NCBI GenBank assembly: GCA_907165135.1
Contig: OU015569.1
Span: 9,362,001 to 9,426,000, forward strand
Origin: Oikopleura dioica
Taxonomy: Eukaryota; Animalia; Chordata
Length of the DNA: 64,000 nt
Direction of reading: 5' to 3'
The position numbers and the translations under genes are program-made. Each line of letters opens with the position of its first letter. Within the stretch, counting starts at the first letter, position 1. The notes under the pieces are model-generated. The model searched no databases. It saw only the letters and a list, made by a program, of their open reading frames with translations, and was not told where the DNA came from. This document shows, piece by piece, positions 160-62,700 of this stretch.

Positions 160-2288
160 TCACAATCCATTGAAGGCAGTCATTAACTGGTCGTTAACAT
201 TTTCCTGTTGCGGGGTAGGCGAGTCTGTTTGGTAGATCGTCGTTTCCTGAGACTTCGAGAAGCTCTCTAGGCCGATATTCAGTCCGCTGTACATTTCGTT
301 CGACGGTGATGTAGTGCTGCCAGGCGTCGGCTGAACAACACTATCTGATACCGATCAATCGTGCCGTTACTACCTGAGGCTGTGCACCGTTATATCGGAA
401 ATACGGGTTTTTGAGATCGAGACTATTGTCTGCTTTGCAGCCAGTTTCCTCGATTGAGGCTTCGATTTCTATGTCATAGCTTTGTCGCTTGTTTGCTTTC
501 ATCAGAACACGGCCTGTGACGTACTCGCCTGCTTTAGCGAAGAGTGGAGTTCGGAACAAGCAACGCACTTTTATTGGGTCACAGATGCATTCGTGCACGA
601 TATACCATTACAAAAGTTCAAAGATCAAGCAAAGTGTCCCTGGCCTTGGTACCAATGAGTAAGTGGCTGATTGGGAGCCGTTGACAACCAAACGGTCGTG
701 TAAGAGCCGCAGAACGCAACGTCGAACCAAAAGGCAAGCCCATGAATTGTACCTGATGTATGCACTTGAAATTTGACTGGAATGTCGAGCACATGAAGGT
801 CTTCTTCAGAAGCCTTCTTAAAGTCGACAGAGTATTTGACTGATTTTGCCATAAGAATGCTGACGTCTATAAGTAAAAGTCCCGGTAAAAGCGATTGAAA
901 TTGAATGCTTACCAAAAGTATCAACAATGGGCTGTTTAAAGTACTCAGCTACCGCATCATCTCTGAGCGAGGACAAGTCGACTCCGTGAAAACTTTGTTG
1001 ATACCAGAAATTTGCCTTTTGAAACTGCTCCATATACAACGCCTCGTCCGTGAATGGCGCTACATGAAGATCTCCGATTGATGGAAACATAAGTCCGTCT
1101 TCTTTGAGGAACTAGGCAAGAGATATTTTTAGGAGAGAGAGTAGCCCTTATACGGTTATACCTTTCTAGCGTGGATGAATGTTTCCAGCATTCGTTCGTT
1201 ATAAAGCATGTAACCCATTGGCTCTGAGATGATCATATCGACCTTTTCTGGAAGCTCGACTTCTTCAATTTTCGAAGCAATTACTTTAATTCTACCAGCG
1301 TATTGCGACGAGCTGACCAGTTTTTCGGTGTGCACTGCCATGCTCGAAGCCTAGAAAAAGTAACTGAAGGAGTAAACTACCTCTGATGTACCTCGACCGC
1401 ATAGACTTTTTCCGCGCCCGCTTGCATCGCGAAAAAGGAGAGGATACCCGAGCCAGCTCCGACATCAAGGACGATCTATAAAAAAGTAATGATGCACTAT
1501 CGAGAGGGACAAAAACCTTGTCTTTGAAGTCAACAAAGTTTTGCACCATCGCCTTCTGGTAGGTTCCTTTACGCAGAGTTCGATGACAGTAATTTGCTTG
1601 TGCGGGTAATCATTCCCATAGAGTCGCTGACTCAAATATACCAATAGTATTTGCATTAAACCTTTAATTGCTTTAACTGCTTTTTTAAAACTTGAGACAA
1701 CTATTGCTGATTGATGTAAAAGTAAGCAGAGAGCTACTTTCTCTGTCTGGTTTCGAACTCTGCCTGTTCGAATGTAGTCTTGCATCATGTTTTGCTGCTG
1801 AGAGAGATAACCATAGAACTGGAAGTATTGATCGGAGCTGGAAATTTCTGTTCGTTTATCGAAGACACAGCCACTTTGATCTCTAAATGCACCATTGCCG
1901 GAATTGTTGACGGACCAAAAGAAAACCGGAAATCTATAAATTGTCGGAAGAGCTTAGCATCATCTTCGTTCTCGAATTCCAGCGTCAACTGCGCGTCTCC
2001 GATGATCACTTTGTTCCCGCTGCGGCATACCTCCGATCGTGCAGTCAAGACGATCTCCTTCTGCGGCGTCTTGTTTGTCCTGAGGCACAAATACTCACTC
2101 CAGTCAACCTTTTAAAATTACGATGGCCGAATTCGGCCTGTCCCGAAATATCTTTCCTACAGAAGATGTTACCTCACAATTGAAAGAGTGCACTCATTCT
2201 GCGCTCTCCTTCCGTCGACTTCGATGTTTTCAAGCTTTCCATCCTCGCTGCGGGTTGCGCACTTGAATTCTCTCTTCTTCAAACTCAT
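160..2288 (-). CDS. CARM1: Histone-arginine methyltransferase CARM1/PRMT4 (multi-exon)
   Basis: Spliced translation gives an N-terminal PH-like region, then [43 protein letters not shown] (SAM-binding motif I), [18 protein letters not shown] (double-E loop) and [18 protein letters not shown] (THW loop), ending in [13 protein letters not shown] at 2288 and TGA at 160-162 are inferred from splicing. Confidence 0.95.
1574..1762. mobile_element. 189-bp MITE-like element (10-bp TIR, degenerate 8-bp TSD) forming a CARM1 intron
   Basis: A perfect inverted repeat runs CAGAGTTCGA (1574-1583) / TCGAACTCTG (1753-1762). The flanking 8-mers cctttacg (1566-1573) and cctgttcg (1763-1770) match at 6 of 8 positions. 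The element interrupts the conserved RT-GTYQ junction. Confidence 0.75.
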
Positions 2289-59700: not shown

Positions 59701-62700
59701 AACTTGAAAATTTTCGAATATTTTTCCGATCGGAAAATTGTCCGATCGGACATGAACTTTAATCGGAATCCGAAAAATCCGATCGGAATCGGTAATCGGA
59801 TCGGTAATCGGTCGGATTGGACGAGGTCCGAATCGGATCGGATCGGAATCGGATCGCCAAGACCAACATTTTTTGTCCGATTGGGCAACCCTGCGTGCGA
59901 CGGTGCTTGTCTTTCTTTCAATCGGCCGACACGTTCTTGATATTTTTCCTGTATGCGTTTGTATTTTTCCAGCTCGTACAAAGTCTTGTTGAGCGATTGA
60001 AATTGCTTTTCGAGTTTTACGTGATATTGAGCTTGGCACATCACTGCATGTCGTCTTTGAACGAAGATCACAATCTTAGTTAAAAGATGGAGATGTTTAA
60101 ACCGGTTCCTTTTCACATTCAATTTAATTTTACTAGCATGACGCGATGAGAATTTCTAACAATTTTAAGTTCCCAACGGTCGGTAATAAAATAACTAACC
60201 TTGGACTTACATTCAAATACAAGTAACTTACACAATGAATGAATTAAAATCTTTTCCTGAGAAGTGCTTCTTCAAAGTTAGGTTCCCTCTTCAGAGCAGC
60301 ACTGTAATGGATGATTGCTCGCCTGTAATCTTCGACAACAGAATACATATTTCCCAGTGCAAAGTGATTTATAGCATGTGGGTAACTATCTGCAGCAGCT
60401 CTCATCAAGACAGTTGCGTTCCTAGTATATCCCTGCTTGTGCAAGACATTCGCTATATTCACGAGTGCCATGTCTCTAAGAAGATAGATAAAAACTTATA
60501 TTGTATCAATAGTCACCCTACCGATACTCTACTGGAGCAAGAAGGTAAGCGCGTCGATCGCATTCTAGTGCTTCCTTGGGAAATCCGCGGATTCTCCAAA
60601 AAATCGAAGCCAAATTAAAGAGCACCCAGTCTGATGGATCCCTGCAAAAAATATTAGTCATCAAAATTAATTCAAATGTCCTAGATATCATGTCCACGGA
60701 CACGTACTGAATAGACAGCAAAATGCAGATGGTACGCTCTTGTGGCGGTCATCCAATTATCTATTCAATACCAAAAGAAAAAAACTGATTGTTGGGGTTT
60801 TTGTTAACCTCGAATTCACCTTGATAGTCCGATCGTAATACAGTGGCCCATTTGATCGAGGTCCTCGCCGTTCTTGTAGCGTGACTTCTCTTCCGCAGTG
60901 GTGAAATGAAAGTCCTCCTCGGCGTTTCCCAGAAAATACATCGTTGAAGTGAGGGCATGTTCGCGCAATTCTTCGAACTCCTTCTCAGTTTGCATTCCCT
61001 CCAAATGATCGAACGGGTTCATCCGCCACTTTGCTTCAATAACGGTACAGTAAGGCATAAGGTTCCGTTCCTGCGCCTCTTTTGCAAATCGCTGGTGTTC
61101 AGCCTCTGTCCGGCACTCCAGGCATTTAGTACATTTAAGAAAGTACGGCTTAGTGTTTATGTTGCGCGAGGTAGGATGTATTACGGTGGTCTGGAACAAG
61201 TCGAATTCCTGAAGTTTTTTCCCGGCTGCAGTGCAATTCGCACACGTCCTGTAGTGATCGTATTCGAGGTCACCTTGCTTTTCCGCAGCTTCTACCTCTT
61301 CGAGCACTTCTTTGACACGACTCAGCTCCTCGCCCAGTTTGTTGATTTCTTCGCGTTCCTTTTCTTGCTGCTTGAAGACGCCGACATCGCCGGACAAACG
61401 CCGATTGAGCGCAAATACAGAGTCGTTTAATTCCTAGTCAATTCGCTAATTTACATAACGTACCCCCCCCCCTAGCTCGCTCACATTTTGTGAACATTTT
61501 TCCCTTTTTCGCTTAGTTAAACTCCAACAAGACCCCCCTTGGTCGCTCGCTTTTTGTTACCAAGATCCGTTGGTCGCTTTCCTTCTTTTGCATTCTACGA
61601 CCCCTTGTTCGCCCTCCTTGGTTTCGACGGCGCACCTTTGCTCGCCCGCCTTTCTCCGTCATTTATCCCTTGTTCGCTCCTGAAGCCCCGCGAGAACGCT
61701 TTATAACGCGTTGCTCACTTTCTTTTTCACTTTTAAAAGGCTTTTTAACTCGTAGAATGGTCTCAAAATTCGATTTTCATGATTTTTTCCAAGCAAACTT
61801 ATTTTTTTATGCTCTTTCACGTCCATTTTGTCAAATTTTCATATCTTCTTAATAAGAAGAAATTTGGACACTCCATTTTAAGTAAACATAAGTACTCGAA
61901 ATACATGGATTGAAACTTTGAGACTGTTTTTTTTTTAAAAATCAAATGCCATTTTCCTCGAGAGTTGCAAATTTTGATTAATTTTTCCGAGCTGAGCTGA
62001 GCTGAGCTGACCTGCGAAAAAATTTCTCTGAGCTGAGCTGAGCTGAGCTGGCCTACTTCGGAGGTTTCTGAGCTGAGCTGAGCAGACCTTTTGTTTAAGA
62101 GAGTTGAGCTGAGCTGAGCTGAGCGGACCCTAATTAGAGCTGAGCTGAGCTGTTTTTTACTGTTTTTCGGTAGTAAAATTGTATTCAAATCATTGAGCTG
62201 AGCTTAGCTAAGTGATAATCGTCTGAGCTGAGCTGAGCTGAGCTGAGTGAAAATTGTCTGAGCTGAGCTGAGCAGATCAGATCATTTTCCAAAATCACTG
62301 AGCTGAGCGACTGCTCAGCTCACTCAGCTCAGCAAATTTGCAACTCTGGAACCAGTGTCAACATGAAGATTCGACTATTTTGAGAATAAATGTACATATA
62401 AAGTCAAACTATCAAGTTTACGGCATAATACCGCGTTGCTACAAGATACAAAAATTTAACTGGACGCTTAAAAAAGAGGAAATGAAGTTTAGTTACTGTC
62501 AAAATATTCATGAAAATGAAAATTTAGTTCCCTATGAAAAGCTTGAGTCGAAAGTTCAGTAAGAGCTGTAAGAGCGACCCAAGCCGAGCTAGGCTTTGGC
62601 GGTCTCGCGGCGAACAAGGGATAAATGGGTGAGGAGGAGCGAACAAGGGCGCGCGAGGTAAAAAGAAGGATGGCGACTAATGGAGCGCGCTGAAACAAGA

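Follow-up and report, generated by a model that had tools for sequence, protein, structure and literature searches.

A CARM1 intron of Oikopleura dioica best read as a converted hAT-type transposon, and its comparison with two neighbouring hAT-type elements

Introduction

Introners, found in Micromonas, Aureococcus and other lineages, are short DNA transposons with terminal inverted repeats that lie in coding sequence (Huff, Zilberman & Roy 2016; Gozashti et al. 2022; PMC11282704). They take a gc or gt donor from the element side and borrow the 3' AG of the target duplication, which makes their removal exact (PMC11282704). A text search of Gozashti et al. 2022 found no mention of Oikopleura or tunicates. 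In the larvacean Fritillaria borealis, as summarized from Henriet et al. 2019 in two later papers, lineage-specific non-canonical introns with inverted repeats and target duplications derive from miniature inverted-repeat transposable elements (PMC11282704, PMC13326754). According to the same summaries, these introns are mostly AG-AC or AG-AT, dominate the genome and are spliced out by a modified and permissive form of the U2 spliceosome (PMC11282704, PMC13326754). In the protosplice-site model, a transposon inserts into an AGG(T)-type target, which is duplicated on both sides and yields donor and acceptor while the coding sequence is unchanged (Yenerall & Zhou 2012, PMC3443670); where that paper treats protosplice insertion, Oikopleura is among the indirect cases, with Denoeud et al. 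2010 as the source. Here we describe three short elements, E1, E2 and E3, in a 64,000-nucleotide stretch of the Oikopleura dioica genome (contig 2, 9,362,001-9,426,000; hereafter the window). One of them, E1, is the body of an intron in CARM1 and is best read as a transposon that was converted to a GC-AG intron.

The three elements came from a sequence-only reading of the window, which proposed that they share the terminal 7-mer CAG[AG]GTT (CAGRGTT) and represent stages of an intron-creating transposon system. The spliceosome of O. dioica is permissive and accepts GN-AG introns. To our knowledge, no animal has intron positions more thoroughly reshuffled than O. dioica. The Okinawan assembly OKI2018_I69 has 41% GC and 11% non-GT/AG introns. 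We searched the O. dioica genome (64.28 Mb, 19 contigs) for copies of the elements. We directly observed the structures of the elements, their copy numbers, sites without the insertion in relatives, and host genes that occur once in the genome. On these grounds we consider it probable that E1, E2 and E3 are non-autonomous hAT-type transposons, independent of one another and with nothing in common beyond the terminal consensus of the superfamily, and that E1 made an intron, E2 is recent and E3 is a passenger.

Results

A CARM1 intron built on a hAT-like element

CARM1 is encoded on the minus strand, and the last residues encoded by its upstream exon are ...MMQDYIRTG. Only one AG-ended intron, from 1763 to 1567, restores the highly conserved CARM1 stretch. 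The features of this locus are as follows.

1574-1762, minus strand: E1, 189-bp hAT-like element, body of the CARM1 intron, with CAGAGTTCGA at each end
1567-1763, minus strand: CARM1 intron, 197 nt, GC..AG, consisting of G, E1 and 7 nt of the second duplication copy (CGTAAAG)
1763-1770, minus strand: target duplication of E1, exonic copy, sense CGAACAGG
1566-1573, minus strand: target duplication of E1, second, decayed copy, sense CGTAAAGG, 6/8 match, whose AG is the acceptor

CAGAGTTCGA is found at 1574 on the plus strand and at 1753-1762 on the minus strand, giving a perfect inverted repeat of 10 bp, or 11 bp with the flanking G/C. The intron is as long as the element plus 8 nt, which fits a hAT element that landed in CGAACAGG and whose duplicate has since drifted to CGTAAAGG. 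Splice sites at or adjoining the repeat and the duplication thus make exact removal possible for E1. The claim of the sequence-only reading that E1 lies inside a CARM1 intron and has a decayed duplication was borne out. In the intron RNA, the two ends pair as an 11-bp stem (minimum free energy z = -3.07). Because translation through the unspliced intron shifts the frame and CARM1 has a single copy in the genome, the intron is predicted to be removed by splicing, and the conservation of the restored stretch points the same way.

Precisely these 197 nt are absent in three Oikopleura-like metagenome contigs, whose exons are 75-80% identical to those of the window. Three more distant CARM1 exon fragments are also uninterrupted at the E1 site, and all of them retain the next intron, after KDK. 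Mammalian (mouse/human) CARM1 is colinear across the site. Because relatives and distant exons are uninterrupted and mammalian CARM1 is colinear, the E1 intron is, judged by these comparisons, a lineage-specific gain by insertion.

A pattern search with the terminal repeat showed the right repeat of E1 to be 14/16 identical to CAGAGTTCGAAATCTG, the terminus of a multi-copy family. With up to one mismatch allowed, CAGAGTTCGAAATCTG matches the genome 108 times, whereas the reversed control gave 0. At least 24 matches are arranged as inward-facing pairs, 121-1256 bp apart; one such pair, of 190 bp, lies on contig 2 near 10.69 Mb. Most simply, E1 would be a decayed member or cousin of this family. 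Contig 3 (2.9 Mb) and the first 0.6 Mb of contig 4 contain a strikingly large share of the 108 termini.

The shared 7-mer and the structural scan

CAGRGTT occurs 20 times in the window, compared with 14.8 +/- 3.5 in shuffled sequence, and 7 of 100 shuffles had at least 20 sites; it is not enriched. We rejected the 7-mer as a stand-alone signal, since its count is unremarkable against the shuffles. A structural scan was also run, which required CAGRG ends, an inverted repeat of at least 10/12, a duplication of at least 6/8 and a length of 60-5000 bp. In the window it picked out E1 and E2 and no other element, and 30 shuffles yielded no candidate; its cut-offs equal the repeat and duplication values of E1 itself, and the calculated expectation is about 0.07 per window.

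CAG[AG]GTT was found at both ends of E1 and E2 and at the right end of E3, but the left end of E3 is GAGAGTT, so that the claim of three elements with this end holds in part. The impression that the elements look unrelated holds for their interiors; comparison of E1, E2, E3 and a further element in a putative UNC79 exon (see below) revealed no internal homology.

E2, a young insertion in a TTC17-like exon

E2 lies in a tetratricopeptide repeat (TPR)/TTC17-like coding exon, with the following features.

59079-59893: E2, 815-bp hAT-type element inside the coding exon, repeat CAGGGTTGCCCAAYCGGA, 17/18
59071-59078: target duplication of E2, left copy, CGTGCGAC
59894-59901: target duplication of E2, right copy, CGTGCGAC, perfect over 8 bp
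59033-60054, minus strand: TTC17-like exon (ends inferred) interrupted by E2; removal of E2 and one duplication copy restores a continuous frame

CAGGGTTGCCCAA stands at 59079 on the plus strand and at 59881-59893 on the minus strand, as a perfect inverted repeat of 13 bp. E2 had been placed at a TTC17 junction with a perfect duplication; the duplication is there, but E2 is in the exon interior, with the inferred donor about 40 nt further downstream. Its family has three near-identical full copies, and the window copy differs from one of the others by 2 substitutions in 815 positions. The family further includes about eight diverged copies, which range from 184 to 1676 bp and in nearly all cases have perfect duplications of 7-8 bp. 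In a related metagenome contig (P0001, L057), the exon is uninterrupted, the E2 site is empty and the coding sequence is continuous, and the E2-bearing exon is single copy in the genome. Like E1, E2 therefore interrupts coding sequence at a site whose ortholog is empty in relatives. These results support E2 as a very young insertion in coding sequence.

The sense duplication of E2 is GTCGCACG; G precedes the repeat, and positions 6-7 are AC. Seamless removal would therefore require a GC-AC intron and is not available with an AG acceptor. Among the GN-AG options none is seamless, and each alters at least 2 residues. The least disruptive in-frame option combines GC at 59894 with AG at 59066 and loses 2 codons; another mild one joins GG at 59890 to a strong CTTTCAG acceptor at 59044. 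About one third of all GN-AG pairs around E2 are in frame by chance, so the existence of such options proves little. Translation through E2 hits a stop within the element. Any splicing of E2 would thus be imperfect, and we only infer that it may occur. Of two word searches for Okinawa-lineage proteins or transcripts spanning E2, one gave a single distant relative and the other gave no match.

TPR repeats are the only features shown in the host exon of E2. The gene is called TTC17-like after the sequence-only reading and the human sequence, and an ESM Atlas search to name the exon gave no usable match. The intron upstream of the E2-bearing exon (60054-60262, minus strand) is presumably GA-AG (CTCAG/GAAAAG ... 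TTCAAAG/A), the best fit by colinearity with human TTC17. The inferred donor after the E2-bearing exon is GAG/GT at 59032 in the window and GAG/GG at about 1808 in L057, which is possibly a lineage difference.

E3, a passenger in another transposon

E3 lies upstream of the TTC17-like gene, outside coding sequence, and interrupts nothing.

61960-62348: E3, 389-bp member of the CAGAGTTGCAAATTT family, left end truncated to GAGAGTT, without a duplication here
61455-62797: host transposon, 1343 bp, terminal repeats of about 165 bp, contains E3 and was amplified as a composite

CAGAGTTGCAAATTT forms the right end of E3 at 62334-62348 on the minus strand, and the left end, at 61960, reads GAGAGTT. 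The family has at least 40 copies in the genome, and at least 10 independent copies have a perfect 8-bp duplication. The composite of host transposon and E3 has itself been copied at least 10 times. Two composites (L037 and L039) keep the E3 duplication, GAACCAGT, together with about 300 bp that are missing from the window composite, and the loss of this segment accounts for the truncated left end of E3. E3 is therefore nested and without a duplication, as had been noted. Its reading as a stage of the same intron-making process failed, as it sits in another transposon and outside coding sequence. The host transposon has inverted-repeat ends TAACGTACCCCC... and is possibly flanked by TA.

Assignment to the hAT superfamily and search for a transposase

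Non-autonomous elements of the hAT superfamily (hobo/Ac/Tam3, Hermes, Charlie-type miniature elements) have 8-bp duplications, short inverted repeats starting with (C/T)A(G/A)NG and heterogeneous interiors, and known examples include elements that start with CAGAG or CAGGG. Duplications of 8 bp are perfect for E2 and in at least 10 copies of the E3 family, match at 6/8 for E1, and are lacking for the E3 of the window. The terminal inverted repeats of the E1, E2 and E3 families are all of the (C/T)A(G/A)NG type. Dispersed copies were found for E2 (three plus about eight diverged) and E3 (at least 40), while E1 itself is single. Because of the 8-bp duplications and the CAGRG ends, E1, E2 and E3 are assigned to the non-autonomous hAT-type transposons. 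The three were presumably mobilised by a hAT transposase.

A profile search gave nine Dimer_Tnp_hAT matches in the genome, and one genomic open reading frame (ORF) matches the C-terminus of the Hermes transposase. A 5.9-kb element with CAGGGTGTCAAATCGCGG on both sides carries a Hermes-like hAT C-terminal domain in an ORF of 156 amino acids; no catalytic domain was recognisable in it. This element (L068:3494-9431; contig 4, about 376.5-382.4 kb) also occurs in L067, L069 and L070, in about seven copies, some of which are inverted or composite and rich in tandem repeats. A hAT domain fragment is also enclosed by a 1580-bp element with ends CAGGGCTGCCGAA and the 8-bp duplication TAGTAGAC. The CAGGGTGTCAAATCGCGG and CAGGGCTGCCGAA termini differ from those of E1, E2 and E3. 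ORFs adjoining the hAT C-terminal domain matched no family or solved structure. Pfam PF14372 and PF14291 gave zero matches in the genome, though controls likewise gave no signal.

A 3.2-kb tandem segmental duplication was seen at L071:2192-9430 (contig 3, about 1.855-1.862 Mb). Both units hold the same hAT-like insertion, flanked by TAGTAGAC, which measures 820 bp in one unit and 1580 bp in the other; the two sizes imply an internal deletion after the duplication, or the reverse.

What the terminus contributes

CAGRG is a general hAT terminus, and every hAT-like family that we met in this genome begins with it. Positions 6-7 vary among these local families (TT, CT, TC, TG, AT). The terminus of the E2 sister subfamily is CAGGGCT, not CAGGGTT, and CAGGGTC, CAGGGTG and CAGGGAT also occur. 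This argues against the proposal that the 7-mer defines a special superfamily.

The similarity extends past the 7-mer in some cases: E2 and E3 share CAGRGTTGC, and E3 matches a variant of the E1-like family at 14/16. Such extended terminal similarity points to related transposases in one hAT clade, not to an adaptation for splicing.

The sequence-only reading had also stated that in E1 as well as E2 a G precedes the terminal repeat on the sense (minus) strand, which is correct, and had taken this as a property of the elements that pre-adapts them as GC donors. The latter is not supported by the other insertions. Counted from 20 duplications, G precedes the inverted repeat at 7 of 40 ends, and the CAGAGTT-ended element in a nearby putative UNC79 exon has C before its repeat. 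Furthermore, the 3' end of a hAT element, CYCTG, supplies no AG. In E1, G and repeat combine as a GC donor and the AG lies in the duplication; the duplication of E2 has no AG at positions 6-7. In summary, the element contributes little beyond one C, and E1 works through a chance AGG target and a permissive spliceosome.

The element in the putative UNC79 exon (L083:1483-2106; contig 2, 9,456,982-9,457,605) is a 624-bp hAT element with repeat CAGAGTTCAAAA and duplication GCTGGAAC. It lies in an open frame of 848 amino acids, and at least six further long copies are 84-96% identical to it. A scan of the nearby putative MSH6, GCKR and PP2C loci located no such elements. Three more small CAGGG-ended elements with perfect 8-bp duplications were seen in the flanks of other loci, at L043:563-885, L049:790-905 and L067:1734-2157; their repeats are CAGGGTTCGGTA, CAGGGATCTAAA and CAGGGTCCGATA, respectively. 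ORF length across reconstructed empty sites does not discriminate exonic copies, as random sites have a median of 87 amino acids.

Discussion

How E1 may have become an intron

We propose that E1 long ago inserted into the CARM1 coding sequence at a target ending in AGG. The 8-bp duplication would have put an AG directly downstream of the element. The last duplicated G and the first base of the element, C, would then form a GC donor, and positions 6-7 of the duplication would serve as the AG acceptor. A spliceosome that is permissive for GN-AG would remove exactly E1 plus 8 nt, and the insertion could persist as an intron. The 11-bp terminal stem probably aids by drawing the splice sites together. 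E2 would be a very recent insertion, which may either be imperfectly spliced through nearby GN/AG sites or represent a broken allele. E3 would be a passenger within another transposon and have no role in intron making.

Several results weigh against this proposal. A BLAST (Basic Local Alignment Search Tool) search of the genome for further copies of E1 matched E1 alone. Since E1 scores exactly at the cut-offs of the structural scan and is single copy, the structural signal taken alone is modest. The relatives with an empty site are 75-80% identical, and the polarity of gain versus loss would thus depend on the distant exon fragments and on the repeat and duplication signature. Finally, an autonomous hAT transposase with the same termini, which the sequence-only reading led one to expect, was not found intact in the genome. 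Overall, the observations of that reading were partly confirmed and its interpretation was partly supported.

Alternative explanations

Double-strand-break repair, intron transposition or some other process could instead have produced the E1 intron, with the inverted ends and the flanking repeat present by chance. The absence of detectable E1 copies would agree with this, and the AGG of the flanking repeat is expected from the splice-site consensus, with the remaining 3/5 match being unremarkable by calculation. However, a perfect inverted repeat of 10-11 bp that begins with the hAT consensus ends exactly 1 nt short of one splice site and 7 nt short of the other, the repeat is 14/16 identical to the terminus of the 108-match family, and the structural scan gave 0 in 30 shuffles. 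We regard this origin as very improbable. It was also proposed that CAGRGTT elements are one hAT-like superfamily whose termini are pre-adapted as GC donors, and that this forms a system which actively makes introns, of which E1, E2 and E3 would show three stages. The window has no excess of CAGRGTT, and CT, TC, TG or AT stands at positions 6-7 in the E2 sister subfamily and other hAT-like families. The G is found at only 7 of 40 repeat ends and is C in the putative UNC79 element, the 3' end CYCTG gives no AG, no GN-AG pair removes E2 seamlessly, E3 lies outside genes, and no matching transposase was found. These points stand against the exact agreement of E1 with the geometry of G plus CAGAG and AG in the duplication, the G before the E2 repeat together with an in-frame GC-AG splice that loses just 2 codons, the terminal likeness beyond the 7-mer (CAGRGTTGC in E2 and E3; 14/16 for E3 and the E1-like variant) and the fourth CAGAGTT-ended element in the nearby putative UNC79 exon. 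We therefore consider such a system unlikely.

A stronger contender, to which we give somewhat less than an even chance, is that young exonic insertions like E2 are disruptive alleles of the one individual sequenced and not nascent introns, and that E1 is a rare accident. E2 is nearly identical to other copies, has no seamless splice and stops read-through inside the element; its site is empty in a relative, and no database ORF with a filled site came from another sample. On the other hand, the host gene of E2 is single copy and otherwise intact in the window, and several in-frame GN-AG options with good acceptors surround the element. Our preferred reading, of three independent hAT-type elements with different fates, takes in both outcomes for E2.

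Significance

E1 is a clean example of a lineage-specific intron that retains hAT inverted ends and a flanking duplication. It shows how an AGG target and the first base of the element can yield a seamless GC-AG intron, and E2 is the matching "time zero" case. The value of the pair is that of a well-documented instance and a test bed, not of a new principle. We consider it possible but doubtful that O. dioica continues to gain new, often non-GT introns from hAT miniature transposons, and in quantitatively important numbers. If so, in-frame splicing of many exonic insertions, E2 included, would begin shortly after they arrive, and these would be refined over time into ordinary introns like E1; this would explain part of the extreme intron turnover and of the 11-12% non-canonical introns of the species.

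Comparison with known systems

The mechanism is already known from introners and Fritillaria; E1 is a single good example, and there is no evidence for a dedicated system. Compared with other hAT non-autonomous elements, E1-E3 have the same duplication length and the same start of the repeat, while an intact partner transposase with the same termini was not identified in this genome. E1 resembles introners in that the 3' AG comes from the duplication, the donor comes from the element side and removal is exact. Introners, however, form hundreds to thousands of near-identical introns with strong splice signals, whereas E1 is a single decayed copy. Its hAT ends provide no acceptor and contribute just the C to a weak GC donor, and its duplication is 8 bp instead of 3 bp. 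Fritillaria, also a larvacean tunicate, likewise has non-canonical introns with inverted repeats and duplications, but in the accounts cited above these are AG-AC or AG-AT and dominate the genome, whereas E1 is an individual GC-AG case. In the protosplice-site model, an AGGT target gives a GT-AG intron; in E1, AGG and the C of the element give GC-AG.

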